A stretch of DNA of 64,000 nt from Rebecca billardiae RCC1528 (Eukaryota > Protista > Haptophyta), in the NCBI GenBank assembly GCA_965240325.2, contig OZ251222.1, positions 4,836,001-4,900,000 on the forward strand, read 5' to 3'. The notes under the pieces are model-generated. The model ran no database searches and was not told the DNA's origin. It saw nothing but the letters and a program-made list of their open reading frames with translations. Made by a program: the position numbers and the translations under genes. Positions within the stretch are counted from its first letter, which is position 1. The number at the start of each line of letters is the position of its first letter. This document shows positions 1,398 through 60,650 of this stretch, one piece after another.

Positions 1398-2365
1398 TGT
1401 CTACAGCTTGATGACCCGGTTGCCGAACCGCCGTCCCGAGGGCCGCACTGCGCGTCTGCGGTCGTACCGCAGGCTGTATACTGCTGCTGGCGCCGGTCTC
1501 ACGTCAGACTCGTCATGTCATACTCATTCTATGATTTAACGACACAGGTCCAGACAGGTAGGACGACGCGGGTCTCCTGATTCGTCGGCGGCAGTGCCCG
1601 ATCGTCGACACGAAGTCGGCGTTGGTGGCAGAGCATAGCCTGCACCGCGATCGTAAAGCTTGAGCGCGGCCTTGAGCTGCTGGAGCGCGATCCACCTGCG
1701 CTGCGCGGCTCGCATGGCCCTGCTGTGCCCCGAGCGAGGGCGATGGTGCAGGTCCGGATGTCAGCTGGCAGTCTCAGCCGCTGGTAGCAGCTGGTCGAGC
1801 CTGCCCCGTGCTCCCCGAGCGGTCGCGTACGCGCCTGCCGCTCGAGCCAGCTGGCTGGCTGGCGGCGGCTGGCGCTGCGGCGTCGTCCAGGGTGCGCTTC
1901 GTCCGCTGCTGAGGCAGCTCCTCGTCGTGCAAGTCGTCGCCCGGGGGCGAGTCTCGGTCCTCGTGGAGCGGGGCAGCAGGGACTGGCGTGGGTGCAGCGG
2001 TCGGTGCCAGGCGCGCTGCCGCCTTGCGCGCCTGGCGTTCCTCAAGTGACGGCGCGGCGCGTCGAGGAGCGACGGCTCGACGGAGAACGAATCCGTCGGC
2101 CCTCGGCGTCGCGCCGTTGCCCGCGCTTCCCACGCCGACTGCTACTAGCTCACCAGTGTTGATATATTGAAAATGATTATAATAATGCAGGGCCGCAACT
2201 GATGCGGAGCCGTGAAGCCTACGGCCCGCGTGCGGGCGCCAGCGGACCACGCGGCACGCCTGCCGAGTGCTGTGGTGGGCGCCGGGCCTGAGGACGAATT
2301 TCCGCCCTGCCGCTGCGCATCCTCGCGCCCGTTCATCAGGGCTCAGCCGGGCTCGGGCTCGGCAC

Positions 2366-3574
2366 TTAGGCGCGGCGCGCGGCGCGCGCCGCGCCGACGG
2401 CGACGAGCGCGGCCGCGGCGAGCGCGGCCGCGGCGAGCGCGCGAGGCCGCGTCCACGCGAGCGAGCGCGCGCGGAAGAGCAGGCCGTCCGTCGGGTAGAC
2501 GATGCCCACCTGCATGCGCACGCTATCCGCCAGCTCGGCGATCGCGACCGAGTGCGCGTGCGGCATCTGCTCGCACTCGAGCCGCCCCGCGCGCACCGCT
2601 GCCTCGACGGCGTGCAGCTCATAGGCCAGGCCCTCGCTGTGCGGGAAGTGGAGGGACGGCGGGCGCGCGGCGCCGGCGGGGCCCGGCCAGCGCGGGGGGA
2701 GCGGGTACTCGTGCGTGCGCACCTCGAACTCGCCGCGCCCGCCCTTCGCCACGCGCACGCTCAGCCCGGTCGGGCAGTGCGCCGGACTGTGCAGCAGCAC
2801 AGAGCCGCGCGTGCACACCAGGACCGTCTGCTCCGCGCCCGCGCCCGTGTAGCCCCACGCGGCGCAGCCGAGCTGGGCGGGGCCGAAGGCGATGGCGGCG
2901 CTGACCTGCGCGTCGATCGTGCCGCTCTCGTTGCGGTGCTGCTGCCCCAGCGCGCGCACCGCGCTGTGCGCGCCGAACAAGTGCACGCACGCCGCGAGCG
3001 GGTACACGCCCAGCATCAGCGTCGCGCCGCCGCCGAGCGCGCGCGTGAACTCGGGGCGGCTGGAGCCGAGGTCGTCGACGTACGAGAAGTCGGAGAGGAC
3101 GGTGGTCAGCTCGCCGATCTCGCCGGAGCGCACCACGCGCGCGGCCTCCTCCACCGCGGGGAAGAAGCGCGTCCAGTGCGCCTCGAGCACGAAGCGGCGC
3201 CGCCGGCGCGCCTCAGCGACAATCCTGCGCGCGCCCGGCGCGTCGATGGCGAGCGGCTTCTCGACGAGGACGTGCTTGCCGGCGCGGAGGCAGAGGAGGG
3301 CGTGCTCCACGTGCTGCAGGTGGAACGTGGCGACGTAGACCACGTCCACGTCCGCCGCGTGCGCCACCTCCGCGTACGCCGCCCGCCCGTGCGCGCTCGA
3401 CGCGCGGCAGCCAAAGAGGGCGGCCATGCACTGCGCCTGCGAGCGCGAGCGGCCCGCGACGGCGACGAGCTCGTTGGTGGGCGAGGCCTTGAGCGCGCAG
3501 GCAAAGTCGTGCGCGATGCGCCCCGTGCCGATGATGCCCCAGCGCAGCGGCCGCTCCGCCGCCGCCGTCTGCAT
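2366..3574 (-). CDS. Gfo/Idh/MocA family NAD(P)-dependent oxidoreductase (dihydrodiol/xylose dehydrogenase-like)
   Basis: LRWGIIGTGRIA Rossmann motif, GKHVLVEKP, EAHWTRFFP, LGGGATLMLGVY; ATG at 3574 chosen just before the domain; hydrophobic C-terminal tail. Confidence 0.9.
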   Translation of the reverse strand: MQTAAAERPLRWGIIGTGRIAHDFACALKASPTNELVAVAGRSRSQAQCMAALFGCRASSAHGRAAYAEVAHAADVDVVYVATFHLQHVEHALLCLRAGKHVLVEKPLAIDAPGARRIVAEARRRRRFVLEAHWTRFFPAVEEAARVVRSGEIGELTTVLSDFSYVDDLGSSRPEFTRALGGGATLMLGVYPLAACVHLFGAHSAVRALGQQHRNESGTIDAQVSAAIAFGPAQLGCAAWGYTGAGAEQTVLVCTRGSVLLHSPAHCPTGLSVRVAKGGRGEFEVRTHEYPLPPRWPGPAGAARPPSLHFPHSEGLAYELHAVEAAVRAGRLECEQMPHAHSVAIAELADSVRMQVGIVYPTDGLLFRARSLAWTRPRALAAAALAAAALVAVGAARAARRA

Positions 3575-3996
3575 GGCGTCCAGCGAATCCAGGCAGCCGG
3601 CCGGTGCGCCGCCCACGAGCCGGCGGCCGCCGAGCGCGCAGCATTTTATCATTTTTATGATATGCCGGCGGCCACCTTCAAATGTCACATGCAATCTGAA
3701 TCGTGCGCTTTGCTGTGGTGAACTATGTCAGGCACAGACTGGCGTGACGCGGAAGCTGTCACGCGGCCTGGCAGCGGTGGCGCCGTCGGAGTCGTTGCGG
3801 TCCCAGTCCGTCAGGGCCATTCACCTGGGCAGCGGAGTGAGACAAGGGCGGTAGCTGATGCCAGCAGCCGTCAGTCGCAGTCTGTCAGGCCGGGCCGGTA
3901 GTGCCGGCCGGTACAGTACTGCGGCTCCGCACGGTGAGCGCGGGCCGGCCGCGCGGAACGGCATCAGTCCGCTTGGCCTTGCAGACCCCGCCATGG

Positions 3997-4512
3997 TCAT
4001 CGACGGTGATGGCCATCGTGGTGCCACACGATGCCTTGCGGCGACGGACGGCGCTTGCCGGCGTCGGGTGGCGGCTCCGGGAGCAATTCCGTCGCGTGCG
4101 TCACGCAGATGAGCCGCATGTTGTTGGGCGTGCGCGCCTCGCACCTGCTGATCGAGTCGATCTTGCGCTCGCACTGCTCGCGCGAGAGCCGCTTGCAGAA
4201 GGCCTCGAGGAAGTGCGGGCGCACGTTCAACGCCTGCCGCATCCAGCGGCGCAGGCAGTTGCACGCCTCGCTGCCGCGCTCGCACCCCGCCACGCCGCAG
4301 CTCTGCGCGTGTGCAAAGCAGTGCTTGTTCGGGACGCACGAGTGGAACGCGCCTTCGTCGCGGGTTGGAGCGCGAGGCGGCGTCGAGGAGGTGCGGGCGG
4401 GGGCGTAGAGCGAGCGGCGCGCCGTGGCGTTGTGTGCGCGCGCCGTGCCCGCCGCGCCCGACGCCGCAAGCGAGAAGAACGCTAGCGCCCGCCAACGGAG
4501 GCCACCCGCCAT
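3997..4512 (-). CDS. Putative secreted cysteine-rich protein (171 aa), unknown function
   Basis: Signal-peptide-like MAGGLRWRALAFFSLAASGAAG, 10 Cys within about 80 aa, GC3-rich codon usage. Confidence 0.6.
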   Translation of the reverse strand: MAGGLRWRALAFFSLAASGAAGTARAHNATARRSLYAPARTSSTPPRAPTRDEGAFHSCVPNKHCFAHAQSCGVAGCERGSEACNCLRRWMRQALNVRPHFLEAFCKRLSREQCERKIDSISRCEARTPNNMRLICVTHATELLPEPPPDAGKRRPSPQGIVWHHDGHHRR

Positions 4513-5035
4513 CGTGCCAGCAGGCTCAACGGCCGGCAGCCGAGGAAAGATCAGTCCGGTGTTCAGCTTCTTACAAACATCAGTCTGAGTTCTCAGACTG
4601 GCAGGTGCTCCAAGGACTGTGACGTTCGACAGAGTGCTTTCGCGCGACGATGATGAACAAAGTGGTTCGGAGGCCGAGGAATACCACTTTTCGCGGCGAG
4701 TCCCGCCGGGATCTCCCTTGGCCGGGTGACGAAGCGCAAGCTCCACAGCTAGCGCTGTGGGCCAGTCTGAAAGTCACGCGGCACATCACACCCGCGTCAG
4801 TTCTGTGTGGTGAACGGTGGGACCGGCAGACGGCAGCGGACTTTCACCGGCTGGGCTGCCCCTTTGTACGTGCTCGTAATGACAGCACGCCACACGTCGT
4901 TCGCCTCGAAACTCGTAACTCGTCGCCCGGCAGCACAGCCACTTGCTTGACCGGATACGCAGCAGCGGCGCTTTCGAGTGGGGCGACGCCGACGCCGACG
5001 CGCAGGCTCGGAGAGAGGGCCGAGTGGCGCGCGGC

Positions 5036-31400: not shown

Positions 31401-32140
31401 GCGTGCAGCGCGCGCGGCTCGAGCCGTCCGCCGCGGGGGCGAGCAGCGTCGCCGGCGCCGCGCAGCCGCCGCCGCCGGGCGCGCCGGCCAGCACGCAGCA
31501 CAGCAGCCCGGGCCCGTACTCGGCAAAGCCCGCGCCCACCACCGTCACCACCGTGCCGCCGCGCACGGGGCCGCCGGGCGGGTGCACCGACGCGACCGAG
31601 ACGGCGCTCAGCTCGTACAGCTCGAAGGTGATGGCGCCGAACAGCGGCTCCAGCCGCGCCTCCCCGCCGGGCAGCGCGAGGCTCACGTGGTACACGCCCG
31701 CGCTGCCGCCCGCGCTGCCGCCCGCGCTGCCGCCCGCGCTGCCGCCCGCGCTGCCGCCCGCGCTGCCGCCCGCGCTGCCGCCCGCGCTGCCGCCCGCGCT
31801 GCCGCCCGCGCCGGACGAGGGCGCGGCGCACACGGCGGTCGAGTCTGAGAGGCGCGTGGCGGCCGAGAGCAGGAGGGGCGCCGCGCCGTCCGGGGAGCCG
31901 TCCGCGCGCACGCGCGAGAAGGCGCACTGCGCGCCGCCCAGCGAGTCGAAGCCCGAGCCGGAGAGTGTGAGCGCGCTGCCGCCGCCGCCGAGCGGCGCGC
32001 CGCGCGGCTGCGCGGAGGCGAGCAGCGCGCGCACGGCGGGAGGCGGCGGGGGCGGCGGCGAGGGCGGCGGCGGCGAGGGCGGCGGCGAGGGCGGCGAGGG
32101 CGGCGGGAGCGGCAGCGTGCGCGGCGGCGGCGGGCGCGCG

Positions 32141-32172
<32 letters not shown>

Positions 32173-35100
32173 CGGCGAGGGCGGCGCCCCGGGCGGAGGC
32201 GCAGGAGGCACGCTCGGCGGCGGCGCCGGCCGCGGGCTCGGTGGCGCACCCGGCGGCAAGGAGGGCGGCGACGTCGGTGGCGATGACGGCGGCGGGCTCG
32301 GCGGCGCCGGCGGCGGGAACGGCTGCGTACGCGGCGGCGGCGGCAGGTGCGGCGGCGGGCTCGGCGGCGGCGGGCTCGGCGGTGGCGAGGGCGGCGGCGA
32401 GGGCGGCGGCTGCAGCGGCGACGGCGGCAATGGCGGCGGCGAGGGTGGCGGCGCGCTCGGTGGCGAGTGCGGCGGCGGGTGCGGCGGCGGGCTGGGAGGC
32501 GACGACGGTGGCGGGCTCGGCGGTGGGCTCGGCGGCGGGCTCGGCGGCGCCGGCGGCGGGAACGGCTGCGTGCGCGGCGGCGGCGGCAGGTGCGGCGGCG
32601 GGCTCGGCGGCGGCCGGCTCGGCGGCGAGTGGGGTGGCGGCGAGGGCGGCGGCTGCAGCGGCGGCGGCGGCAATGGCGGCGGCGAGCGGGGCGGCGCGCT
32701 CGGTGGCGAATGCGGCGGCGGGTGCGGCGGCGGGCTGGGAGGCGACGACGGTGGCGGGCTCGGCGGCGGGCTCGGCGGCGGGCTCGGCGGCGCCGGCGGC
32801 GGGAACGGCTGCGTGCGCGGCGGCGGCGGCAGGTGCGGCGGCGGGCTCGGCGGCGGCGGGCTCGGCGGTGGCGAGGGCGGCGGCGAGGGCGGCGGCTGCA
32901 GCGGCGACGGCGGCAATGGCGGCGGCGAGGGGGGCGGCGCGCTCGGTGGCGAGTGCGGCGGCGGGTGCGGCGGCGGGCTGGGAGGCGACGACGGTGGCGG
33001 GCTCGGCGGCGGGCTCGGCGGTGGGCTCGGCGGCGCGGGCGGCGGGAACGGCTCGGCGCGTGGCGGCGGCGGCGGACGCGGCGGCGGGCGCGGCGGCGGC
33101 GAGCTTGGCGGCGGCCCGGGTGGCGGCGAGGGCGGCGGCTGCAGCGGCGGCAGTGGCGATGGCGGCGGCGAGGGGGGCGGCGCGCTCGGTGGCGAGTGCG
33201 GCGGCGGCGAGTGCGGCGGCGGGCTCGGAGGCGGCGGTGGCGGCGATGACGGCGGCGGGCTCGGCGGTGGGCTCGGCGGCGCCGGCGGCGGGAACGGCTG
33301 GGTGCGCGGCGGCGGCGGCAGGTGCGGCGGCGGGCTCGGCGGCGGCGGGCTCGGCGGTGGCGAGGGCGGCGGCGAGGGCGGCGGCTGCAGCGGCGACGGC
33401 GGCAATGGCGGCGGCGAGCGGGGCGGCGCGCTCGGTGGCGAATGCGGCGGCGGGTGCGGCGGCGGGCTGGGAGGCGACGACGGTGGCGGGCTCGGCGGCG
33501 GGCTCGGCGGCGGGCTCGGCGGCGCCGGCGGCGGGAACGGCTGCGTGCGCGGCGGCGGCGGCAGGTGCGGCGGCGGGCTCGGCGGCGGCCGGCTCGGCGG
33601 CGAGTGGGGTGGCGGCGAGGGCGGCGGCTGCAGCGGCGGCGGCGGCAATGGCGGCGGCGAGCGGGGCGGCGCGCTCGGTGGCGAATGCGGCGGCGGGTGC
33701 GGCGGCGGGCTGGGAGGCGACGACGGTGGCGGGCTCGGCGGCGGGCTCGGCGGCGGGCTCGGCGGCGCCGGCGGCGGGAACGGCTGCGTGCGCGGCGGCG
33801 GCGGCAGGTGCGGCGGCGGGCTCGGCGGCGGCGGGCTCGGCGGTGGCGAGGGCGGCGGCGAGGGCGGCGGCTGCAGCGGCGACGGCGGCAATGGCGGCGG
33901 CGAGGGGGGCGGCGCGCTCGGTGGCGAGTGCGGCGGCGGGTGCGGCGGCGGGCTGGGAGGCGACGACGGTGGCGGGCTCGGCGGCGGGCTCGGCGGTGGG
34001 CTCGGCGGCGCGGGCGGCGGGAACGGCTCGGCGCGTGGCGGCGGCGGCGGACGCGGCGGCGGGCGCGGCGGCGGCGAGCTTGGCGGCGGCCCGGGTGGCG
34101 GCGAGGGCGGCGGCTGCAGCGGCGGCAGTGGCGATGGCGGCGGCGAGGGGGGCGGCGCGCTCGGTGGCGAGTGCGGCGGCGGCGAGTGCGGCGGCGGGCT
34201 CGGAGGCGGCGGTGGCGGCGATGACGGCGGCGGGCTCGGCGGTGGGCTCGGCGGCGCCGGCGGCGGGAACGGCTGGGTGCGCGGCGGCGGCGGCAGGTGC
34301 GGCGGCGGGCTCGGCGGCGGCGGGCTCGGCGGTGGCGAGGGCGGCGCCGAGGGCGGCGGCTGCAGCGGCGGCGGCAGCGACGGTGTCGGCGAGGGTGGCG
34401 GCGCGCTCGGCGGCGCGAGCGGCGGTGAGTGCGGCGGTGCGCTCGGAGGCGCAAGCGGCGGCGCCGACGGCGGTGGCGACGGCGGCGGGCTCGGCGGTGG
34501 GCTCGGTGGCGCCGGCGGAGGGAACGGGTCGGTGCGCGGCGGCGGTGGTAGACGCGGCGGCGGGCTCGGCGGCGGCGGCGCTGGCGGTTGGCCGGGCGGC
34601 GGGCTGGGCGGCAGGCTGGGCGGTGGGCTGGGCGGCGGGATCGGTGGCGGCGAGGGCGGCGGGCTTGGCGGCGGCACTGACGGTGGCATTGGTGGCGGGC
34701 TCGATGGCGGAAATGGCGGCGGCAGAGCCGGCGGCGGCGAGGGCGGCGGCAAAGGCGGCGGCGAGGGCGGCGGCGCAGGCTGCGGCGGGCTCGGCGGTGG
34801 GCTCGGCGGCGGGCTCGGCGGTGGCGATGGCGGCGGCAACGGCGGTGGGGATGGCGGCGGGCTCGGTGGCGGCAAAGGCGGCGGCGCGGACGGTGGCGGC
34901 GAGGGTGGCGCCGAGGGCGGCGGCGAAGGCGGCGGGCCGGGCGGCGGCGGGCTGGGCGGTGGGGCTGGCGGCGGGCTGGGTGGGGGCGAGGGCGGCGGAG
35001 TGGGCGGCCGCGATGGCGGCGGGCTCGGCGGCGGCGACGGGGGTGGCGGGCTCGGCGGCGGGCTTGGCGGCAGCAGAGGAGGCGGGCTCGGCGGCGGGCT

Positions 35101-38100
35101 CGGCGGCGAGATGGGCGGCGGCGAGGGCGGCGGGCTTGGCGGCGGCGAAGGCGGCGGCGGGCTTGGCGGCGGCAACGGTGGTGGGCTCGGCGGCGGGCTC
35201 GGCGGCGGCGATGGCGGCGGCGGGCTCGGCGGCGGCGACGGTGGCGGCGATGGCGGCGGCGATGGCGGCGGGAGCGGTGGTGGTGGGCTCGGCGGCGGGC
35301 TCGGCGGCGGGCGCGGTGGTGGCGACGGTGGTGGGCTCGGCGGCGGTGGGCTCGGCGGCGGACGTGGGGGCGGCGTCGGCGGCGGGCTCGGTGGCGGCGA
35401 TGGTGGCGGTGGGCTCGGCGGTGGGCGTGGCGGTGGCGATGGCGGCGGGCTGGGCGGCGGCGAAGGCGGCGGCGGGCTCGGCGGCGGAGACGGCGGTGGG
35501 GTGGGCGGTGGGCTCGGCGGCGGCGACGGGGGCGGCGGGCTCGGCGGCGGGCTCGGCGGCGGCAGAGGCGGCGGGCTCGGCGGCGGGCTCGGCGGCGAGA
35601 TGGGCGGCGGCGAGGGCGGCGGGCTCGGCGGTGGCGACGGCGGCGGCGGGCTTGGCGGTGGCGATGGTGGAGGGCTCGGAGGCGGGCTCGGCGGCGGAGA
35701 CGGTGGCGGCGGCGAAGGCGGTGGCAGCGGGGGCGGCGATGGGGGCGGCGACGGCGGCGGGCTCGGCGGTGGCGGGCTCGGCGGTGGGCTCGGCGGGGGG
35801 TTCGGTGGCGGGGACGGCGGTGGACTGGGCGGCGGTGGGCTCGGCGGCGGACTTGGTGGCGGCGTCGGCGGCGGGCTCGGCGGGGGCGAGGGAGGTGGCG
35901 GGCTCGGCGGCGGGCTTGGCGGCGGGCTTGGCGGCGGGCTTGGCGGAGGCGAAGGCGGCGGTGGGCTCGGCGGCGGCAATGGCGGCGGGCTGGGCGGCGG
36001 GCTGGGCGGCGGCGACGGTGGAGGCGGTGAGGGCGGCGGCAACGGTGGCGGAGATGGCGGCGGTGAGGGGGGCGGGCTCGGTGGTGGCGGGCTCGGCGGC
36101 GGGCTCGGCGGCGGGCTCGGCGGCGGGCTTGGCGGCGGGCTCGGCGGTGGCGGGCTCGGCGGCGGGCTGGGAGGTGGCGAGGGTGGCGGGCTCGGCGGCG
36201 GAGACGGTGGTGGCGGGCTCGGCGGCGGGCTCGGCGGCGGCGAGGGCGGCGGGCTTGGAGGCGGTGAAGGCGGTGGGGGGCTCGGCGGAGGCGAGGGCGG
36301 CGGGCTCGGCGGTGGACTCGGCGGCGGCGACGGTGGCGGCGGTGACGGCGGCGGCGATGGTGGCGGCGACGGTGGCGGCGACGGTGGCGGGCTCGGCGGT
36401 GGCGGCGACGGCGGTGGGCTGGGGGGCGGGCTGGGCGGTGGCGATGGCGGTGGGCTCGGCGGCGGCGAGGGCGGCGGGCTGGGCGGTGGACTCGGCGGCG
36501 GCAACGGTGGCGGCGGTGACGGCGGCGGCGACGGTGGCGGCGACGGTGGCGGCGACGGTGGTGGGCTCGGCGGTGGCGGCGAGGGCGGCGGGCTTGGCGG
36601 TGGGCTGGGTGGAGGCGATGGCGGCGGGCTCGGCGGTGGGGGGCTCGGCGGCGGGCTCGGTGGCGGGCTCGGCGGCGGGCTCGGTGGTGGCGACGGCGGC
36701 GGCGGGCTGGGCGGTGGGCTCGGCGGCGGCGATGGTGGCGGGCTCGGCGGCGGCGACGGTGGCGGCGACGGTGGCGGTGACGGCGGTGGACTCGGGGGCG
36801 GCGACGGTGGCGGAGGGCTCGGCGGCGGCGAGGGCGGTGGGCTGGGCGGTGGGCTGGGCGGCGGCGACGGTGGCGGCGGTGACGGAGGAGGTGACGGTGG
36901 CGGCGACGGCGGCGGTGATGGCGGCGGGCTCGGCGGTGGCGGGCTCGGCGGCGGGCTCGGCGGCGGGCTGGGCGGCGGTGACGGCGGCGGGCTGGGCGGT
37001 GGCGGGCTCGGTGGCGGGCTGGGCGGTGGCGATGGCGGCGGGCTCGGCGGCGGCGACGGTGGCGGCGGGCTCGGCGGAGGGCTCGGCGGCGGGCTCGGCG
37101 GCGGTGACGGCGGTGGGCTCGGCGGTGGCGATGGCGGTGGTGATGGCGGTGGGCTCGGGGGCGGGCTCGGCGGCGGTGGGCTCGGCGGAGGCGAGGGCGG
37201 CGGGCTCGGCGGTGGGCTCGGCGGCGGTGACGGTGGCGGCGGCGACGGCGGCGGTGATGGCGGCGGTGATGGTGGCGGGCTCGGCGGCGGGCTCGGAGGC
37301 GGCGGGCTCGGCGGCGGCGATGGTGGCGGGCTGGGCGGCGGCGATGGCGGTGGGCTCGGTGGCGGTGGGCTCGGTGGCGGGCTCGGTGGCGGGCTCGGCG
37401 GCGGGCTCGGCGGTGGCGATGGCGGCGGCGGGCTCGGCGGTGGCGACGGCGGTGGTGATGGCGGCGGACTTGGCGGTGGGCTCGGCGGCGGCGGGCTCGG
37501 CGGCGGCGAGGGCGGCGGGCTGGGCGGTGGACTGGGCGGCGGCGACGGTGGCGGCGGTGACGGCGGAGGCGATGGTGGCGGCGACGGTGGCGGTGATGGC
37601 GGTGGGTTGGGAGGTGGCGGGCTCGGCGGCGGGCTCGGTGGCGGGCTGGGCGGAGGCGACGGCGGCGGGCTCGGCGGTGGCGGGCTCGGTGGCGGGCTGG
37701 GCGGTGGCGATGGGGGCGGGCTTGGCGGTGGCAATGGTGGCGGCGGGCTCGGCGGAGGGCTCGGCGGCGGGCTCGGTGGCGGTGACGGCGGTGGGCTCGG
37801 CGGTGGCGACGGCGGTGGTGATGGCGGTGGGCTCGGGGGCGGGCTCGGCGGCGGCGGGCTCGGCGGCGGCGAGGGCGGCGGGCTGGGCGGTGGACTGGGC
37901 GGCGGCGACGGTGGCGGCGGTGACGGAGGAGGTGACGGTGGCGGCGACGGCGGCGGTGATGGTGGCGGGCTCGGCGGTGGCGGGCTCGGCGGCGGGCTCG
38001 GTGGCGGGCTGGGCGGCGGTGACGGCGGCGGGCTGGGCGGTGGCGGGCTCGGTGGCGGGCTGGGCGGTGGCGATGGCGGCGGGCTTGGCGGTGGCAATGG

Positions 38101-41100
38101 TGGCGGCGGGCTCGGCGGAGGGCTCGGCGGCGGGCTCGGTGGCGGTGACGGCGGTGGGCTCGGCGGTGGCGACGGCGGTGGTGAGGGCGGTGGGCTCGGG
38201 GGCGGGCTCGGCGGCGGCGGGCTCGGCGGCGGCGAGGGCGGCGGGCTGGGCGGTGGACTGGGCGGCGGCGACGGTGGCGGCGGTGACGGAGGAGGTGACG
38301 GTGGCGGCGACGGCGGCGGTGATGGTGGCGGGCTCGGCGGTGGCGGGCTCGGCGGCGGGCTCGGTGGCGGGCTGGGCGGCGGTGACGGCGGCGGGCTGGG
38401 CGGTGGCGGGCTCGGTGGCGGGCTGGGCGGTGGCGATGGCGGCGGGCTTGGCGGTGGCAATGGTGGCGGCGGGCTCGGCGGAGGGCTCGGCGGCGGGCTC
38501 GGTGGCGGTGACGGCGGTGGGCTCGGCGGCGGCGACGGCGGTGGTGATGGCGGTGGGCTCGGGGGCGGGCTCGGCGGCGGCGGGCTCGGCGGCGGCGAGG
38601 GCGGCGGGCTGGGCGGTGGACTGGGCGGCGGCGACGGTGGCGGCGGTGACGGAGGAGGTGACGGTGGCGGAGACGGCGGCGGTGATGGTGGCGGGCTCGG
38701 CGGTGGCGGGCTCGGCGGCGGGCTCGGTGGCGGGCTGGGCGGCGGTGACGGCGGCGGGCTGGGCGGTGGCGGGCTCGGTGGCGGGCTGGGCGGTGGCGAT
38801 GGGGGCGGGCTTGGCGGTGGCAATGGTGGCGGCGGGCTCGGCGGAGGGCTCGGCGGCGGGCTCGGTGGCGGTGACGGCGGTGGGCTCGGCGGTGGCGACG
38901 GCGGTGGTGATGGCGGTGGGCTCGGGGGCGGGCTCGGCGGCGGCGGGCTCGGCGGCGGCGAGGGCGGCGGGCTGGGCGGTGGACTGGGCGGCGGCGACGG
39001 TGGCGGCGGTGACGGAGGAGGTGACGGTGGCGGCGACGGCGGCGGTGATGGTGGCGGGCTCGGCGGTGGCGGGCTCGGCGGCGGGCTCGGTGGCGGGCTG
39101 GGCGGCGGTGACGGCGGCGGGCTCGGTGGTGGCGGGCTCGGTGGCGGGCTGGGCGGTGGCGATGGCGGCGGGCTCGGCGGCGGCGACGGTGGCGGCGGGC
39201 TCGGAGGAGGGCTAGGCGGTGGCGACGGAGGCGGAGTCGGCGGTGGGCTCGGCGGTGGCGACGGCGGTGGCGATGGCGGCGGGCTCGGCGGTGGGCTCGG
39301 TGGCGGCGGGCTCGGCGGCGGCGAGGGCGGCGGGATCGGCGGTGGGCTCGGCGGCGGTGACGGTGGCGGCGGCGACGGCGGCGGTGATGGCGGCGGTGAT
39401 GGTGGCGGCGATGGCGGCGGGCTCGGTGGCGGCGGGCTGGGCGGTGGCGAGGGCGGCGGGCGGGGCGGCGGGCTGGGCGGCGGGCTCGGGGGAGGCGGGC
39501 TCGGCGGAGGGCTGGGCGGTGGTGAGGGCGGTGGGCTTGGTGGTGGTGACGGTGGCGGTGGGCTCGGAGGCGGGCTCGGTGGCGGTGAGGGCGGCGGGCT
39601 CGGCGGCGGGCTCGGTGGCGGCGGGCTTGGCGGCGGGCTCGGCGGCGGGCTCGGCGGCGGGCTCGGTGGTGGCGACGGCGGCGGCGGGCTGGGCGGCGGG
39701 CTTGGCGGTGGCGATGGTGGCGGGCTCGGCGGCGGGCTGGGCGGCGGGCTGGGCGGCGGCGAGGGTGGCGGGCTTGGAGGCGGTGATGGCGGCGGCGGGC
39801 TCGGCGGCGGCGAGGGCGGCGGGCTGGGCGGTGGGCTAGGCGGCGGTAACGGTGGTGGCGGTGACGGAGGAGGTGACGGTGGCGGCGATGGCGGCGGTGA
39901 TGGCGGCGGGCTCGGCGGTGGCGGGCTCGGCGGCGGGCTTGGTGGCGGGCTGGGCGGCGGTGACGGTGGCGGGCTCGGCGGCGGCGGGCTCGGCGGCGGC
40001 GAGGGCGGTGGCGATGGCGGCGGGCTCGGCGGCGGCGACGGTGGCGGCGGGCTCGGCGGAGGGCTCGGCGGCGGGCTCGGTGGCGGTGACGGTGGTGGGC
40101 TCGGTGGTGGTGACGGCGGTGGCGATGGCGGCGGGCTCGGGGGCGGGCTCGGCGGCGGCGGGCTCGGCGGCGGCGAGGGCGGCGGGCTCGGCGGTGGGCT
40201 AGGCGGCGGTGACGGTGGCGGCGGCGACGGCGGCGGTGATGGCGGCGGTGATGGTGGCGGGCTCGGCGGCGGGCTCGGAGGCGGCGGGCTCGGCGGCGGG
40301 CTTGGCGGAGGGCTGGGTGGCGGGATCGGCGGCGGGCTCGGGGGCGGTGGGCTTGGCGGAGGGCTGGGCGGTGGTGAGGGCGGTGGGCTTGGCGGCGGTG
40401 ACGGTGGCGGTGGGCTCGGAGGCGGGCTGGGCGGCGGTGAGGGTGGCGGGCTCGGCGGCGGGCTCGGTGGCGGCGGACTCGGCGGCGGGCTCGGCGGCGG
40501 GCTCGGCGGCGGGCTCGGCGGCGGCGACGGTGGCGGCGGGCTCGGCGGTGGGCTCGGCGGCGGCGAAGGTGGCGGGCTGGGCGGCGGGCTCGGCGGCGGC
40601 GACGGCGGCGGTGACGGCGGCGGGCTCGGCGGCGGCGACGGCGGCGGCGGGCTCGGCGGTGGCGACGGCGGTGGACTGGGCGGTGGGCTTGGCGGCGGCG
40701 ATGGCGGCGGCGGGGACGGCGGCGGCGATGGTGGCGGCGACGGTGGTGGAGATGGCGGCGGGGACGGCGGCGGCGATGGTGGCGGCGACGGTGGTGGAGA
40801 TGGCGGCGGGCTCGGCGGCGGCGGGCTCGGCGGCGGGCTCGGCGGCGGGCTTGGAGGTGGCGACGGCGGCGGGCTCGGTGGTGGTGGGCTTGGCGGTGGC
40901 GATGGCGGCGGGCTCGGCGGCGGGCTTGGTGGCGGCGATGGCGGCGGTGGGCTCGGCGGAGGCGATGGTGGCGGTGACGGCGGTGGGCTGGGCGGCGGGC
41001 TGGGCGGCGGGCTGGGCGGCGGCGATGGCGGTGGGCTCGGCGGTGGGCTGGGCGGCGGGCTCGGCGGCAGCAAGGGTGGCGGGCTCGGTGGGGGCGACGG

Positions 41101-49558: not shown

Positions 49559-51133
49559 ATGCACGCGCTCGCCGCGCGCGCGGGCGACGCGTACGCGCTC
49601 TGCAGCCGCGCGGCCGGCCTGCCGCCCGACGCGCGTGAGTGCCGCGGCCAGCTGGTGCACGTCTTCCTGCTGATGCTCTGCTGGTACTGCATCAGCATCG
49701 GGATCATCTTCTACAACAAGTGGCTGATGCGGCGCATCCATTTTGGCTTCCCGCTCGTCGTGACGACCATCTACATGGCCGTCAAGATCCCGCTCGGCTG
49801 GCTCGCCGTGCGGTGCACCGGCCGCGCCGGCCTCGCGACCGGCTGGCGGCTCGCGCTCACGCGCATCGTGCCGCTCGCGCTGCTCACGTCGGTGGACATC
49901 TCGCTGAGCATGTCGAGCTACCTGTTCGTCTCGACCACGCTGATCACCACCGTCAAGAGCTCGGCGCCGCTGTGGCAGCTGCTCTGGGGGCTGCTGCTGC
50001 GCACGGAGGTGCTCACGCCGCAGCTCGTGGGCGTGGTGGCGCTGGCGTCCGGCGGGCTGCTGCTCGCCACGTACTCGGGCGGCGTGAGCAAGAACCCGTT
50101 CCGCGCGGAGGGCCTCGCGCTGATCGTCAGCGCGACGTGCCTCGCCGGGCTGCGCGGCTGCCTCATGCAGCTCACCCTCCAGCCGCGCAGGCGTGAGCTG
50201 CTGCTCGAGCGGCAGCGCCGAGGCGCGTACGGCGCGCTCGCGTACGGCGCGCTCGGCGCGCTCGGCGGGCCCGGGCAGGGGGCGGACGAGGCGGGGCAGC
50301 GCGAGGGGACGCCGCTCCTGGCCGCGGAGGCGGGCGCGGAGGCGGGCGCGGACGGCGCGCTCGTGCACGACGCGCCCGCGCGTGCCGCGCCCGCCCTCCT
50401 CAAGCGCACCTCGCGCTCGCCGCCGCTCGGCCGACCGCCCGGCGACGGCGGGAGCGGCGGCGGCGCCGCCGCCGACGGCCCGCCGCCGACCCTCGCGCCG
50501 CTGCCGCCGCCGCCGCCGGGCGCCCGCGGCGACGCCGGCGCGCGCGGCGAGCAGAGCCCGCCCGCCTCCTCCGCCGCGCGCCCCGCGTCGCTCGCCTCCG
50601 AGCGCGAGTGCGGCCGCGTGGACGGCAGCGTGAGCGTGGACGGCAGCGTGGACGCGGTGCGGCTCACCTACCTGCTGGCGCCGTGGACGACCGCCTTCTC
50701 GGCCGCGCTGATGGCGGCCCTCGAGTGGCGCCGCTTCGCGGAGTCGGACTTTGTGGCGCACGCGCCGCCGCGGCAGCGGTACGAGACGCTGTGCATGCTG
50801 CTCGGCGCGGGCAGCCTGGTCTTCGTGCTCGTGCTCGTCGAGCTCAAGATCGTCGAGCTCACGTCCGCGCTCACGCTCAGCGTGGCGGGCGCGCTCAAGG
50901 AGTGCATCACGATCGGCGGCGCGCACTTTGTGCTGCACGACCGCCCGCTCTCGGCGCTCAACGTGGGCGGGCTCGCGTGCTCGCTCGTCGGCATCCACCT
51001 GTACCAGCGCTCGCGCCTGGCCGCGCCGCCGCCGCTGCCGCCCGCGGCGATGGAAGACAGCGCCGCGCTGAGCAGGCGGGGCACCAGCGGCAGCCGCAGG
51101 CGGCGCCGTGAGGCGGAGGCAGGTGACGACTGA
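49559..51133 (+). CDS. Nucleotide-sugar/triose-phosphate transporter family protein (SLC35C2-like)
   Basis: WYCISIGIIFYNKWL..FGFPLVVT, DISLSM.S, VKSSAPLW, TSALTLSVAGALKE; about 10 TM with a large Pro/Gly-rich central loop. Confidence 0.85.
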   Translation: MHALAARAGDAYALCSRAAGLPPDARECRGQLVHVFLLMLCWYCISIGIIFYNKWLMRRIHFGFPLVVTTIYMAVKIPLGWLAVRCTGRAGLATGWRLALTRIVPLALLTSVDISLSMSSYLFVSTTLITTVKSSAPLWQLLWGLLLRTEVLTPQLVGVVALASGGLLLATYSGGVSKNPFRAEGLALIVSATCLAGLRGCLMQLTLQPRRRELLLERQRRGAYGALAYGALGALGGPGQGADEAGQREGTPLLAAEAGAEAGADGALVHDAPARAAPALLKRTSRSPPLGRPPGDGGSGGGAAADGPPPTLAPLPPPPPGARGDAGARGEQSPPASSAARPASLASERECGRVDGSVSVDGSVDAVRLTYLLAPWTTAFSAALMAALEWRRFAESDFVAHAPPRQRYETLCMLLGAGSLVFVLVLVELKIVELTSALTLSVAGALKECITIGGAHFVLHDRPLSALNVGGLACSLVGIHLYQRSRLAAPPPLPPAAMEDSAALSRRGTSGSRRRRREAEAGDD

Positions 51134-51230
51134 CGCCGAGTATTAGTTACTCGCCGCCGCTGACTACAACACTTTATTAACGCAGCTCGCATACAGGCGG
51201 CGACTGCGGCGAGTTCGTTTGAATTGGATA

Positions 51231-51418
<188 letters not shown>

Positions 51419-51437
51419 CAATATGATCAGGGCTCCG

Positions 51438-54400
51438 CACCTCAAAGATGTGCGGGTGCCGTTTCTGGACGCTTCTAGCCTTGATCTCCTGAACATTTGT
51501 AGGGGAGATGAGTTTAGTCAGTCGACTGACTAAACTTTTTCTTCAATCAAGGCTCCTCACGACTAGGCGCCGTCTTGCACGAAATCCCTATCCTCTCGTC
51601 TGGCCACGGCCCTTGGTCTGGCGGTCTTGCATCAAATCCTGGACTCGCGAGGGCAAGGGGTGGGCCCTCTACCTACGGCCGCCAAACCGGTAATACGCGT
51701 TCTGAGCCCGGTCTGGTTGCGGGCGGCCCGGGGCCGCCGCGCCCCGGCTGCCGGGGCGGCGACTCGGGGAGGCGAGCGTTGGCGCGCGCCCGCCGTGGCC
51801 GCGGCGGCAGCGGGGTCGTTGGGCCATCCCAGGGGTATCTGAGCCTCTCGACAAGGGGCCGTGGCTGCGCCTCGCGTGGGCTGTACTGCACGCGGGCAGC
51901 CGACACGAATGCGATGCGCCATCCAAGCGCGAGCCCGAGAGCTTTCGCGACACGGGTGCTGCGCGAGCACGTCTGAAGGAGCGGGCAAGGTCTCGAGAGG
52001 AAGCAGGGAGACCACAGAAGTGCTAGCTCGCAACGACAGTCAGGGAGCGCGAGCCGCCCCGCTGCGCTGCCTGAGCCGGTCGCCCCACGGGCACGGCCAC
52101 GGGCCACGCGTGGCGGGCAAACGTGACTGCCGCGCGGCAAGGCTTGGTGAGTGTGTACATGCTTCAAGTGGCTGGTCGCTGGTAGAGCTGCTGCATCCCA
52201 ATCGCGAGCAGCCAGTAACAGCGACTCGGCCGCGCCGCCGCGGCCGTGCTCCGCAGTTCTGGTGCCCGCGCGGAACTGACGGTCACGGTTGCGCACCCGC
52301 GGGCGGCGAGACCAGTCAGTGGGCCGGCTCTGCCGCCGTCCCTGAGCGTGACCCGCAGTGGCGTCGCCGGGCTTGCAGGGGGGTCTAAGCCGGCCGCCCG
52401 CCCGAACCGGAGCCTGGCACGACCGTATCCGGCCCGCGCCGCCGCGCGCTGCCACAGTGGCCGGTGGCGGTGGCACGCGTCGGGCCCGCGCAGCCCGCGC
52501 GGCCCGCGCCGCCGCGCGGCCCGCGAGCGCGGGCCTCATCCGACGAATAAGACTGACGAGTATCACGAACGAATATGGCGCCAATGCGGGATAGTGCGAC
52601 TGGAGTGCTGAGCCGTGGCTGACTACGTCATGCCTACCAGCCGTACGTACATCCCCGCCCACTATTCGGATGGTAGCCCGCGGTCGGCGGCGGCGAGCCG
52701 CCGATGATTGTCCCGCCGGTCGCTGTGACATCCTTCCACTTACGCCAGGTGAAGCGCAGGCCGATGACCGACTGGAAGTCGGTGAACAGGACGAGCTGGT
52801 GCGGGCTCTCGGCGAGCGTCGTGGCGGGAGAGAAGATCTCGGCGTAGTTGTCCGACGCGTTGCCGTTCAGCGGAGCGATCGAGAAGAAGGGCCAGCCGGG
52901 GGCGAGCGGCAAGCTCGCGTGAGATGCGAGCTCGAGCTCGTACCGGCCGCGCAGCCAGCGGCCCAGGCGGTCCTCGGCGAAGAGGTCGATGACGGCAGCA
53001 TCGTACGCGGTGGCATCGACCTGGACCGATGCGCGCTCGGCTGCGTGCAAGCCTCGGCAGTGCGCGACGACGCGCGTGAGCAGCCGATCGAAGATCGCCG
53101 CCTGCTGCTGCTGGCGGACGCGAATGTGCATCGGCTCCCGCCACAGGAACTCACGGTACCGCGCGACGAGGTTGTGCACAGCCTCCGCCGGCGGGCGGTA
53201 CAGCTTCGCGCCGTGCTCGATGGCGACGATGGTGACGTGGCGATACACCTTACTGCTGGCGAGGCAGCCCGCGACACGGCGCTCGGACTCGACGCACGCC
53301 GCAACCAGATCGGCGTCCGCGGCGATGCCAATCTCATCGCGCCCTGCGCGGCGCGCGCGGGCACGCGCGCAGGACGCGCGTCAACACGGGCGGCGGGGGG
53401 GAGCGGGCACGGCGCGCGCGCAGCGGGATCCGATCGTACCGAGATCGAGCACGTGCTCGTCCGCCTCCCCGAGCAAGCACGGCCGCAGCGGGTAGCCGCG
53501 CTGCTGCCCGTCCTCCGCAGCCCCTGTCGTCGTCGGCAGCACGATGCCGCCGTCCGGCTGCTTCCAGGCCTTCAGGCCGACACCGAACTCGAATGGCATG
53601 CGGGCGGTCGGGAGCTGCGCGATGACCTCCTCGGGTGGCTCGGTCAGATTCATGTTCGCCACATGCAGCACGTTGCGCTTGGCCTTGAACGGCTGCGGCT
53701 CGGACTCGCCCTGCCTGGCATCACAGACGACGGGGCGGACGACGACACGCGGTGTTGGCGCGCCGCGGGTATGCGCGCGCAGGGAGGGATCGCGGGCGGG
53801 GCGGCGCACCTCGGGCGCTTGAACGCGGTCCATGCATTCACGAAGAAGTCCAGTGCGCCCCCGCGCGCGATGAACTCCGCAAGGTTCTTCCACACCATCA
53901 CCTTGCCATGCACCGTCTCGACCTCGATCTCCTCCTCCTTCCAGTTGCCGACGTGCTCGTAGACCTCCGCAGGGTGGTAGTCTGCGGTGCGCGTCTTGCC
54001 AGGCAAGTCCTCCACGAAGTAGAACCACTTTACCATGAGGGTCACTGACCCCGCGACGACTTCTTGACGACGCGGCGCACCTGCGCGAGCCCGGCGCGCT
54101 CCGAAGGCCTGCCGTTCTTCTGCAGCCACTGCACGACGACATGGTCTCCGATTCCGATATTGATGCCGCGCCAGATGACGCCGACATTCCGCAATCGTCC
54201 TCCCCGCGTGGCGGCGGTGACGAGCTCCGGCGCGGTGGCCGGCGGGAGCTCCCCGCTCCGTCCATGACTTCGACAAACCGCGAGGGGCCGTTCGACCGGC
54301 GCTCAGCCGGAACGGAGCGACTCAACCAGGCTCGGCGGTTGCTCAAAAACCTATTCATGCCCTCCACCGCCCCTGGTGCAGGCCGGGCGTTGATTGGCCG

Positions 54401-54473
54401 TCGGTTGCTAGTGCAGTTTTAAGAAAATCTCGTGGAACGTGGCCGGAAAAGGCACCCGCACATCTTTGAGGTG
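51438..54473. mobile_element. CAC..GTG TIR element (3,036 bp) carrying a spliced gene
   Basis: Perfect 23-bp TIR CACCTCAAAGATGTGCGGGTGCC (51438-51460 and 54451-54473) with imperfect extension; CG on both flanks. Confidence 0.85.
52634..54036 (-). CDS. Orphan 403-aa protein inside the TIR element; exons 54036-53810, 53714-53440, 53343-52634
   Basis: Two GT-AG introns (95 and 96 nt, phases 2 and 1) join three ORF-track fragments into one stop-free frame with globular composition and GC3 bias. Confidence 0.7.
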
Positions 54474-54631
54474 CGCCGCGCCCGGCTCAAAGTCAAGCGC
54501 GCTCGCCCTCGGCGAGCGGCCAGGGCCTGCCGGCGGCGCGGACGGACTACCGTCCTGCCGACTCTCCCGCCAGTCGGATCCAGTGGACCAGTGATGATAT
54601 CGACGATAGTCGTAGGCATATATATATATAT

Positions 54632-57826: not shown

Positions 57827-58002
57827 TGAGTCTCTGAGTCAGTAATTAATAACATATATATATGTCTAGCCACTCCGCCATGCCCGGCTCGTACAAGGCG
57901 TCGGGTACGAATGGACTCTGGAGCTGGATGGTCGCGGCGCGCGGCGTCGTGGAGTAGACAGACCACAATGATCAATCATGGAACGATCAGGTTAGCTATG
58001 TT

Positions 58003-58168
58003 GGGATTTGAGCAACGAACGACAGCGGGCGCTGGCAGCGGCGTGGCGGTTGAGCTGCTGCCCGAGGTCGAGAGGGCGCCCGCGAGGGATTTGAGCAACG
58101 AACGACAGCGGGCGCTGGCAGCGGCGTGGCGGTTGAGCTGCTGCCCGAGGTCGAGAGGGCGCCCGCGA
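58003..58168. repeat. 83-bp tandem duplication, in copy 1 of the dimer only
   Basis: gggatttgagcaacg..gcccgcga at 58003 and 58086. Confidence 0.9.
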
Positions 58169-58715
58169 GTCGTCAGTCACTGAGCAAGGTCGGCAGATTA
58201 AGGCTGATGGCTCGCTGACACTGCAGTGCTTCCATATCCGCCAGAGGCCGAGGGTGGGCGGGCGGGCAAACGATGAAGCGTGCGGGTTGACGCGACAGCG
58301 GCGAGAGCAAGAGACCATTGCATGAGGGGCGACGCGGCGAAGACAGATGATGACGTCGCGCCGCCGAACGATCAGGCGGGGAGCCGGGCCACACAGACAG
58401 CCAGCGACCTTACCGAGCAGAGGGGCTGCGGCGACTGCGGTGCACCTCCTGCAGCGGAGCGTGCACCCGGCAGTGCCCGATGCAGGCGATTCCCTTGCCC
58501 AGCTCGGCGCCTTCGTCGTGAGCAGCCCCATGGCGCCCCCGAGAGTGAAGCCTGATCGATCCGATGTGAGCGGTAACCAACCGAGTCCTGCAGGTGCGCC
58601 GCTGTGGGCCAGATTGGCAGCGCACCAGGACTCCGCCTGCGCGCGGCGGTGCGCACAGGACAACGCAGGAATGCCGTGCGAGCCGGATTCTTGGCGTCGC
58701 TCATAGACACTCAGT

Positions 58716-60650
58716 AGCCTGGTCCAAACGCACTGGAGCACTTTCGGGGATTTTATCGCCAAATGAACGCGGGCCCCTAGGCACGCGCTCACACCCGGAA
58801 ACAGCGTAACAAATGGGCCCAGCCCGGGCGCAGCAAAAGTTTCGGCCTAAAAATCGCATCCGCGGCCCGTCGTGAGCGTGCGCGCGCGCGCCGCGGACAA
58901 CTACGGACACATAGAGAATCGTGAGTCCGAATGTGGGTAAGTACTTAGCCGAAATGAGCCCAAACGCACGAACCTACTTATTGGCGTACGTCGAGGCGAG
59001 CATGAACCCTGGTACAGGCCATTAGGATGGGCTGTGGTCTGTGCGCAAGTGGCCGTACTCAACTACTGCAAGATCGACTATGTTACCCATTTATACCCGC
59101 ATATTATGGGCAATGTACCCGCATAAGTATGAGTTCTGGACCTGTATAATTAAAATGCCACTATGTCGTTACATATTCGCCATAGGTGGGTAGCTGTCCC
59201 AGGCTGCACGATTAGTGCGGCGCTCGGGGTGCAGTGGTCGGACGAGGCTCCGCCTGGCCTTCCGCGCACTCCTGCAGACAAGAAGAGGGCCGGACTCCCA
59301 CCCGGCCAGGCGTGCGGCAGTCGGTCAGGTGCTGGACCTGGTCTGGAGACCATCTCCTGCGTGGCAACTGGCCGATCTGCGGCACAACGCGCGCCGCCGT
59401 GAGCCACACGGCAGGTTCGCAATGGCCTCCGGATCGCGTGTCCATGGCGGCGTGCATCGAGTCATTCAAGCTGTCAAGTCGCGTGCCACGCCCGCCCTTT
59501 CACTTGGGGCATCAGTACTGCCTACAACGACGACATGTGCGTCCTTAGATGAGGCATAATCGCGATTCTAGCTGCCCGTCCAAGGGTCAGATCGCACGTC
59601 TTTGCTCGCCCGACAGCCTCAACGGCGGACTGATGTGATCCGCGGGTGACGATGCGACCGCTTCGAGTGCGCCTACGGCCACCACCGGGGTGGGGATCGT
59701 TCATGGGCACCCTCTGCGTGCCATGACATGCTCTGGCCGTGCGTGGTGACTTGGCCCACCGCGCGTAAACGGGAAAGACACCCGAGCACGTGCTTCCGAG
59801 CCACCCGAATGGCACAATGTGCCACCCATGGACACCAAACACGTGCCAGAGCACGAGCCTTGCGTGCTGGAGTAGCCGCACGACACCAAGGAAGACGTAT
59901 GCGCGCTCTCAACCATCTTCAAGCGACGACTCCGTCGACTCTGCCTCGCAGACCGCGGTACGATCTTCGACCTTGTGCTCGCAGCAAAGGCCATGACGGT
60001 AAAGCAGCACCCAGGCGATGGGAGTCAGCCGGCAGCCACTACACTGCGACTGTACACACCCAGCACCGCAAGGCGAGCCATCCTGCTCGCCACCAGCCCG
60101 TCATACAGCTCCACGAGGAGCACAAATCGACAGCCGCCGCTCAGGACGACCCATGCGCAAACGTGACGGGACTGGCCGGATGAAGCGTTGGCGATGCGCA
60201 GCGCGCCCAACGCTGGTGGTGGCATCGAGTACATGCTAGGGGTAGGCGGTGGCCCACACGAGCCGTCGCGTGGCCCGCATATTACCCGAGGTGGCCCGTC
60301 TCGAAGGCGCCGCGCAACCCAGCAGGTGAGCGTTCGACGCGCGCCGTCAGGCGAGAAGTCGACCTGGCGACGGACCGCGGGCGGCGGAAGCAACGCAGAC
60401 ATGTCGCTCAAGGTGTGCACGCACACCACCGGGGCACCCGAACGATGTGTCCAGCACTACACCTGACATGAGGCGGCGCAGTCGTCCAGTCGAGGCTCTC
60501 GAGCCCCTTCCCGACCTTCGTCGCGGCGAGCCGTCGGACGGCCGGTGGCGATTTTTGACGAGCGCGACGAGCGACGAGAAATCGGGAGAAATCAGGCGCC
60601 CAACATCCGAAAAGGCTTTTTTACTGGCGAAAATCGGGATGGACCAGGCT
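58716..60650. mobile_element. Nested non-autonomous DNA transposon (1,935 bp), 11-bp TIR, 9-bp TSD
   Basis: AGCCTGGTCCA / TGGACCAGGCT; ACACTCAGT at 58707-58715 and 60651-60659; the empty site is visible in copy 2 (61527-61535). Confidence 0.88.

Follow-up and report, generated by a model that had tools for sequence, protein, structure and literature searches.

The locus considered here lies in a window of 64,000 nucleotides from the haptophyte alga Rebecca billardiae RCC1528 (contig OZ251222.1, positions 4,836,001 to 4,900,000 of the forward strand), and it raises the question of what kind of mobile element occupies window positions 51438–54473, a unit with CAC ends and a single gene, and which protein moves it. 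An initial annotation, made from the letters of the window, had described the unit as bounded by terminal inverted repeats (TIRs), compared it with the CMC group of DNA transposons and regarded its gene as an orphan. We find that the element belongs to a young family, denoted family A, which inserts without duplicating its target and has two sister families in the same genome. The best overall explanation, which we hold at about even confidence, is that these elements form a lineage of TIR transposons without target-site duplications, in which the gene of the element itself is the sole candidate for a transposition protein; the enzymatic role of that protein is a prediction. The element is laid out as follows, in window coordinates:

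51438..54473, no strand: whole element, family A, 3,036 bp, with ends 5'-CACC...GGTG-3'
51438..51460, plus strand: left TIR, perfect 23-bp core, from inverted-repeat search and genome matches
54451..54473, minus strand: right TIR, perfect 23-bp core, from inverted-repeat search and genome matches
51511..51536, no strand: perfect 26-nt palindrome, 74–99 nt from the left end, on the 3' side of the gene
51461..52633, no strand: non-coding interior of ~1.17 kb, without three-base GC periodicity

The perfect 23-bp TIRs reported initially are borne out. Their cores start with CACC at 51438 and 54473, giving the ends CACCTCA...TGAGGTG, and the inverted repeat extends beyond them into arms of 33 nt (51436–51468 and 54443–54475) that are 94% complementary. 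The host is a very GC-rich alga with a 72-Mb genome, in which the 23-mer core has 37 matches, compared to none for a reversed control pattern, and nearly all of these matches form inverted pairs spaced 3,013 bp start to start. Full-length comparison across the genome yields a total of 19 family-A copies on 16 contigs, in line with the earlier view of a mobile unit spreading an uncharacterised gene. Thirteen of the 19 are 99.87–100% identical over their full length, with at most four differing positions per 3,036 bp, and the sole difference between the window copy and the others is the non-coding base 52618. Four copies form a subfamily at ~98.7% identity, one copy has a 147-bp internal deletion, and a single older copy, L049 (~96% identity, ~3.1 kb), carries this gene as its only one and an unaltered 26-nt palindrome. 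Family A is a young, mobile, TIR-bounded DNA transposon.

The stretch between the stop codon and the left TIR, estimated initially at about 1.2 kb of non-coding DNA, measures ~1.17 kb and shows no codon periodicity. Its open reading frames (ORFs) have no Pfam match, an Rfam scan of 51461–52633 gave no match, and a genome search places the sequence exclusively in the 19 family-A copies, whose near-identity makes covariation analysis impossible. Periodicity together with genome and Pfam scans of the element revealed no further coding capacity outside the three-exon gene described below. Furthermore, the genome contains no larger element with the family-A TIR (23-mer with up to three mismatches; 14-mer with up to one) or with the 1.17-kb interior.

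The mode of insertion emerges from the flanks of the copies. The CG found on both sides of the window copy had been taken for a short target-site duplication, but only two of 17 family-A copies have CG on both flanks; one has GGCC on both sides and the others share nothing. No consistent flanking repeat is present across 25 insertions of the related families. One family-A copy (C25:1399023-1402059) sits within a repeated host element, and five of five empty paralogous sites correspond exactly to the filled site minus the transposon, with 0 bp duplicated and 0 bp lost. Similarly, where a copy of the related family B lies inside a 222-bp tandem array, the adjacent units read straight across its junction. 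As a positive control, the same method recovers duplications of 2 bp (GT) and 7–8 bp for foreign elements nested in copies of the third family, C. The CG/CG of the window copy is a chance occurrence and not a target duplication; the sequence to the right of this copy occurs nowhere else in the genome and so offers no empty site. Family A joins both of its ends at one target position, and the target is neither duplicated nor shortened. The 50 outward half-sites of the 25 insertions show a weak preference for G at positions 1–2 and no motif, and the flanks are GC-rich and variable, with no AAATTT or other consensus and no orientation-specific target di- or tetranucleotide.

Several individual copies and sites deserve mention. 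The host element hit by a family-A copy (L065–L070, e.g. G000:C1:1289420-1289597) is itself a repeat, with at least 17 copies at 99–100% identity and many more at ~80%. The deletion derivative L043 (G000:C35:499063-501952), from which 147 bp of exon 1 are gone, lies between two direct host repeats of ~68–70 bp that are 94% identical; these may be a tandem repeat that was already there or a duplication of unusual length. Two subfamily members, L045 (G000:C29:1145169-1148197) and L047 (C34:355065-358093), have an identical 321-bp right flank and differing left flanks, and the first base of one of them is mutated (TACC); this arrangement suggests that a segment was duplicated, or that recombination took place through the element, rather than that two insertions occurred.

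The three families share CACC...GGTG ends, the absence of duplications and a palindrome near one end, which in family B is degenerate and was recognized by eye. Family B elements are 2,426 bp long, with a 16-bp TIR that starts with CACCACG, and occur in ~13 copies at 99.7–100% identity, without target duplication (e.g. L054:664-3088, G000:C10; further copies at L051–L060). The TIR sequence is unrelated to that of family A and the elements are otherwise unalignable, except for a stop-riddled gene fragment with 50% amino-acid identity to residues 24–159 of exon 3 of the family-A gene (74–75% at the DNA level). Family B has been active very recently without any known intact gene. Family C is gene-less and measures 1,458 bp (L082:426-1883, G000:C18:1393225-1394682, and at least eight more pairs); its terminal 38–100 nt are similar to the family-B ends, and none of the three flanks checked shows a duplication. 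It carries a perfect 22-nt palindrome 86–107 nt from one end; the perfect palindromes of families A and C thus fall within 74–107 nt of an end. Nested foreign elements account for the extra length of every larger B and C copy inspected.

Two foreign elements are nested in family-C copies. One, at L080 ~1900-4561 (G000:C16 ~57899-60560), is 2.66 kb long, is flanked by a clean 2-bp GT duplication and ends in CACAGTG...CACTGTG, the V(D)J heptamer. The other, at L081 ~516-2305 (G000:C36), has the ends TAGGGGGTCC...GGACCCCCTA and a 7–8-bp, hAT-like duplication (TTCCAAA).

The gene of family A occupies the minus strand and comprises 403 codons, beginning with the ATG at 54036 and closed by the stop codon 52636–52634. 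Its parts, with the GC content of third codon positions (GC3) where applicable, are:

53810..54036, minus strand: exon 1, second half of a probable BAH-like domain; GC3 0.88; the ATG at 54036 falls mid-domain
53715..53809, minus strand: intron 1, 95 nt, GT..AG; it shifts the frame, and the codon phase switches exactly there
53440..53714, minus strand: exon 2, middle region; GC3 0.91
53344..53439, minus strand: intron 2, 96 nt, GT..AG; it holds an in-frame stop
52634..53343, minus strand: exon 3, conserved C-terminal domain with no matching fold, including the stop; GC3 0.87
54045..54302, minus strand: what is left of the ancestral 5' coding sequence, covering the first half of the BAH-like domain, without ATG and out of frame with exon 1; stop at 54044–54042

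The exon and intron coordinates proposed initially hold, with GT..AG borders and consistent phases. The GC3 of 0.87–0.91 across the three exons compares with 0.97 in the neighbouring host gene, and the GC periodicity switches phase at intron 1 and collapses in intron 2. The queries for homology searches were single exons, the 5' piece of L049 that is naturally continuous, and proteins from databases. Exon 2 aligns, up to its last codon, with residues 4–65 of the homologue P0012 (E 3e-10) and residues 22–86 of the homologue P0003 (E 9e-6), and homology of these intron-less proteins to exon 3 begins right after the exon 2 match. Because intron-less homologues run from the last codon of exon 2 into exon 3, intron 2 is confirmed; intron 1, which no homologue spans, is placed solely by its GT..AG borders and the phase switch. 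Judging from these sequence features, the predicted three-exon gene is real.

The gene had also been described as intact and uninterrupted. The 403-codon frame does hold, but the window copy is a 5'-crippled derivative, in which the ancestral start, 81 codons upstream, has been lost and the frame shifted. The ~260 bp upstream of the ATG (54302–54045) show codon-like periodicity in another frame that has no ATG. Compared to the window copy, L049 contains 40 extra bp at 54252/54253, which supply an ATG, and lacks the 2 bp at 54052–54053, resulting in a single continuous frame that is 81 codons longer and runs into exon 1. The arrangement in L049 is ancestral, because the BAH domain begins in the upstream frame, which encodes its first half. 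All 17 young copies, including that of the window, descend from one master copy in which a 40-bp deletion had removed this start codon and a 2-bp frameshift had arisen in the middle of the BAH domain. The ATG at 54036 lies on the WFYxxED strand of the BAH-like domain. Upstream of it, an overlapping ORF contains four ATGs that are out of frame (54358, 54265, 54187 and 54142), and at best the window copy would make an N-terminally truncated protein. L049, for its part, carries a TAG in exon 3.

Host chromatin proteins are the usual carriers of BAH domains, and the N-terminus of the ancestral protein is probably a BAH-like domain. The contiguous 5' piece of L049 (L049:563-1030) encodes 156 residues, and 25 of its 30 neighbours in the ESM Atlas belong to BAH families, the best of them scoring 0.94. 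The Pfam BAH model PF01426 gives no match on this piece at E-values up to 1, and a genome-wide scan with it reaches three host BAH genes, not the element. The L049 piece aligns with the domains of these host genes such that the motifs GDxVxV, WFYxxED and FF occur in order (hhalign, P = 0.0019). A hidden Markov model built from these three host domains scores the piece at 16.5 bits, compared to a maximum of 8.7 in 2,000 shuffles. A single-sequence AF2 model of the piece, computed with no alignment, has a mean pLDDT of 37. We also considered an N-terminal RuvC or DEDD (IS110-like) domain on the basis of a weak Terminase_6C 'RNase-H-like' match of exon 1 (E 0.057 and 0.013), and rejected it: the strand concerned is the WFYxxED strand of the BAH-like domain.

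Given this N-terminus and the homologues of its other end, the gene is not an orphan. An exhaustive HMMER search with exon 3 yielded ten unnamed environmental homologues from short metagenome and read-archive contigs, with 30–40% identity and E-values down to 3e-34. Exon 3 and these proteins have in common the motifs GWxFF, YAEIV, LFTDF, GLRFxRRKW and GPxxPxxGY, and therefore the frame is coding to its end; the Asp of TDF and the Arg of RRKW are invariant. The conserved domain spans ~200 residues, which are predicted to fold confidently: an AF2 model of P0003 from an 11-row alignment reaches a pLDDT of 85–96 over residues 140–310. As to what this fold might be, a Foldseek comparison of the P0003 model, a check proposed at the outset, found no structural match in PDB or among viral models, and there is no RNase-H-like match for the model in PDB. 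Profile comparison with PDB sequences was negative, and the ESM Atlas provided no usable match for exon 3. In a word-index protein search, exon 3 found itself only, and profile A2 and the N-terminal piece of L049 found nothing; scans of metagenome contigs for the DNA encoding the homologues were likewise blank. The initial annotation had seen no DDE transposase, tyrosine recombinase, RuvC or zinc-finger motif, and the exons, the non-coding ORFs and the homologues indeed have no match to Pfam transposases, recombinases, RuvC, zinc fingers or Rep/HUH proteins. In the conserved columns of the homologue alignment there is no HUH or tyrosine-recombinase motif and no CxxC pair.

Several candidate assignments were rejected along the way. 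Conserved E, D, R and K residues on three neighbouring strands had suggested TnpB/Fanzor, tyrosine-recombinase or PD-(D/E)xK enzymes, none of which is supported by the fold search. Elements of the TnpB/Fanzor kind encode a RuvC and zinc-ribbon protein and, at the element end, a guide RNA; here there is no OrfB/RuvC match in Pfam, no conserved CxxC pair and no Rfam match. Polyubiquitin rows in the search of PDB sequences are an artefact, being sums of nine ~2-bit matches.

The surroundings of the insertions show one further regularity. A (TA)n tract of at least 16 nt lies within 300 bp of seven of 17 family-A and four of eight family-B copies, against a background of 2.2% of the window (rough binomial P = 4e-8); the family-A sites concerned are that of the window (51216–51418) and the flanks of L032, L034, L038, L039, L042 and L046. 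The bias is present for copies with a crippled BAH region too, and could be a matter of safe havens or of fragile DNA instead of targeting by the BAH-like domain. In the window, positions 51216–51418 form a compound (TATC)n(TA)n(ATG)n microsatellite that follows an intron-less ORF of 524 codons on the plus strand (49559–51133), by eye only a transporter, which ends ~300 bp before the element and is uninterrupted by it. Elsewhere in the window, positions 32001–41000 have a GC content of 0.84–0.87 and a GC skew of up to +0.45.

With respect to the origin of the gene, all 35 genome matches of exon 3 lie within family A or B elements or their fragments and none in a free host gene. Because the gene is absent elsewhere in the genome and common to two otherwise unalignable families, it appears native to the lineage. 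We consider it likely that this single gene belongs to the transposon lineage, and is not recent cargo, and that it encodes a BAH-like chromatin reader, a middle region and a domain of ~200 residues. Captured cargo, one of the options named initially, is correspondingly unlikely: the gene occurs in the genome only inside these elements, and family B keeps a decayed piece of it. The specific scenario of a non-autonomous TIR element that recently captured a host chromatin gene, as in Pack-type transduplication, would fit the fact that BAH domains are typical of host chromatin proteins, with three host BAH genes in this genome. However, the C-terminal domain has no host paralogue, and the gene has the introns and codon usage of a long-resident one. 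Furthermore, the otherwise unrelated family B has the same gene at just 74–75% DNA identity, and therefore the association between gene and element is old. We regard such a capture as quite improbable.

What the protein does is a separate matter. It might serve the transposition of its own family, as a transposase of an undescribed type or as a subunit that brings the ends to chromatin, a reading that we favour with somewhat less than even confidence; in its support, family A is alone in bearing a gene and codes for nothing else. More tentatively, and with clear doubt on our part, the C-terminal domain would be the catalytic core of a new kind of eukaryotic transposase that attaches the TIR ends at a single position on both strands of the target, hence without duplication, while the BAH-like module would originally have tethered it to marked nucleosomes, and families A, B and C would constitute a new superfamily. 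A number of observations weigh against an enzyme encoded by this gene. Neither a catalytic motif nor a known transposase fold was found, with Pfam, NCBIfam and PHROGs blank, and a VIA-align comparison with representatives peaked at Z = 3.2, far below the usual chance level for such models, with TBP-like and other generic alpha/beta folds as best matches. An intact full-length gene is absent from the assembly, and all 17 young copies multiplied after their BAH region had been crippled. The subfamily of four copies spread even though its exon 3 carries an 8-bp frameshift, and therefore mobilisation in trans certainly occurs. Selection offers no support either: pN/pS, the ratio of non-synonymous to synonymous change, is 0.75 between the window copy and L049 (six synonymous and 14 non-synonymous differences), so that purifying selection is not seen and there is no sign of constraint within the genome. 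Finally, families B and C are also young, and their TIRs share only CACC with family A.

Alternatively, all three families could be non-autonomous and moved by an unlinked enzyme of another transposon or of the host, with the BAH-like gene as an accessory, for instance in chromatin targeting or anti-silencing, kept from a former two-gene autonomous element. Transposition of copies with a crippled BAH region or even a frameshifted exon 3, the youth of families B and C without an intact gene, and a protein devoid of any nuclease or recombinase signature all agree with this possibility, which we nonetheless consider rather unlikely: the genome has no larger element with the family-A TIR or the 1.17-kb interior, the larger B and C copies inspected are long only through nested foreign elements, and the older L049 is also ~3.1 kb with only this gene. 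Under the preferred explanation, in which the gene provides the transposition protein of its own lineage, the window copy would probably have been moved by the truncated protein or in trans. Movement as single-stranded DNA or via a site-specific recombinase, in the manner of HUH or rolling-circle elements (Helitrons, Replitrons, IS200/IS605) or of Cryptons, would explain both the missing duplication and the palindrome. HUH elements have no long TIRs, encode a Rep/HUH protein and always insert in one orientation, at a short target motif. What family A has in common with them is the 0-bp duplication and a palindrome near an end, its position conserved in families A and C, and Replitrons are present in algae, mostly without duplications (PMC10288648). 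However, the TIRs of family A are long, perfect and exactly terminal, its flanks contain no target motif or orientation-specific di- or tetranucleotide, and its protein has no Rep or recombinase match and no HUH or tyrosine-recombinase motif in the conserved columns, whereas the HUH Rep-encoding Replitrons have terminal repeats that are direct, not inverted (PMC10288648). This alternative is improbable. As for the CMC group (EnSpm/CACTA, Mirage, Chapaev), its members make 2–4-bp duplications and encode a CMC-type DDE transposase. Family A resembles them in its CAC...GTG inverted termini and in being a multi-kb TIR element able to carry extra ORFs, and the CG on both flanks of the window copy could pass for a 2-bp duplication. 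However, both diagnostic traits are absent when tested, given CG/CG in two of 17 copies, 0 bp at the empty sites and no CMC transposase, so that this assignment is refuted and its probability negligible.

Among known systems, the closest in behaviour is Spy, a group of the PHIS superfamily. According to Han et al. (2014; PMC4122938), Spy elements are eukaryotic, bear TIRs and insert precisely, without a target-site duplication and leaving the target unchanged; they encode a PIF/IS5-like DDE transposase, insert between AAA and TTT in invertebrates, and were reported as the first eukaryotic cut-and-paste group without target duplication. Family A shares the TIRs and the precise insertion without duplication. 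Family A differs in having no detectable DDE transposase (DDE_Tnp_4 type), no AAA|TTT target, a protein that combines a BAH-like domain with a domain of unmatched fold, and a GC-rich algal host.

Chromatin readers encoded by mobile elements offer a second point of comparison. Chromoviruses are retrotransposons carrying such readers, and family A resembles these systems in that it encodes a module reading histones or nucleosomes, which could anchor integration at a particular chromatin state. In the part of the survey bioRxiv 10.1101/2021.11.30.470311 considered here, the readers found in transposons are mostly Chromo and PHD domains fused to recognizable transposases or integrases, and the surveyed portion of this literature describes no BAH-carrying transposon. 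Relative to that portion, family A stands apart in that its reader is BAH-like and the partner domain has no counterpart among known folds.

Families A, B and C represent a second lineage inserting without duplication, unrelated to Spy, with three families in one alga and the support of empty sites. If the BAH-like protein is the enzyme, transposases would gain a new class and target choice a new mode; if it is not, the elements point to another, bluntly integrating enzyme. Given that family A is young and nearly uniform, either outcome is directly testable.

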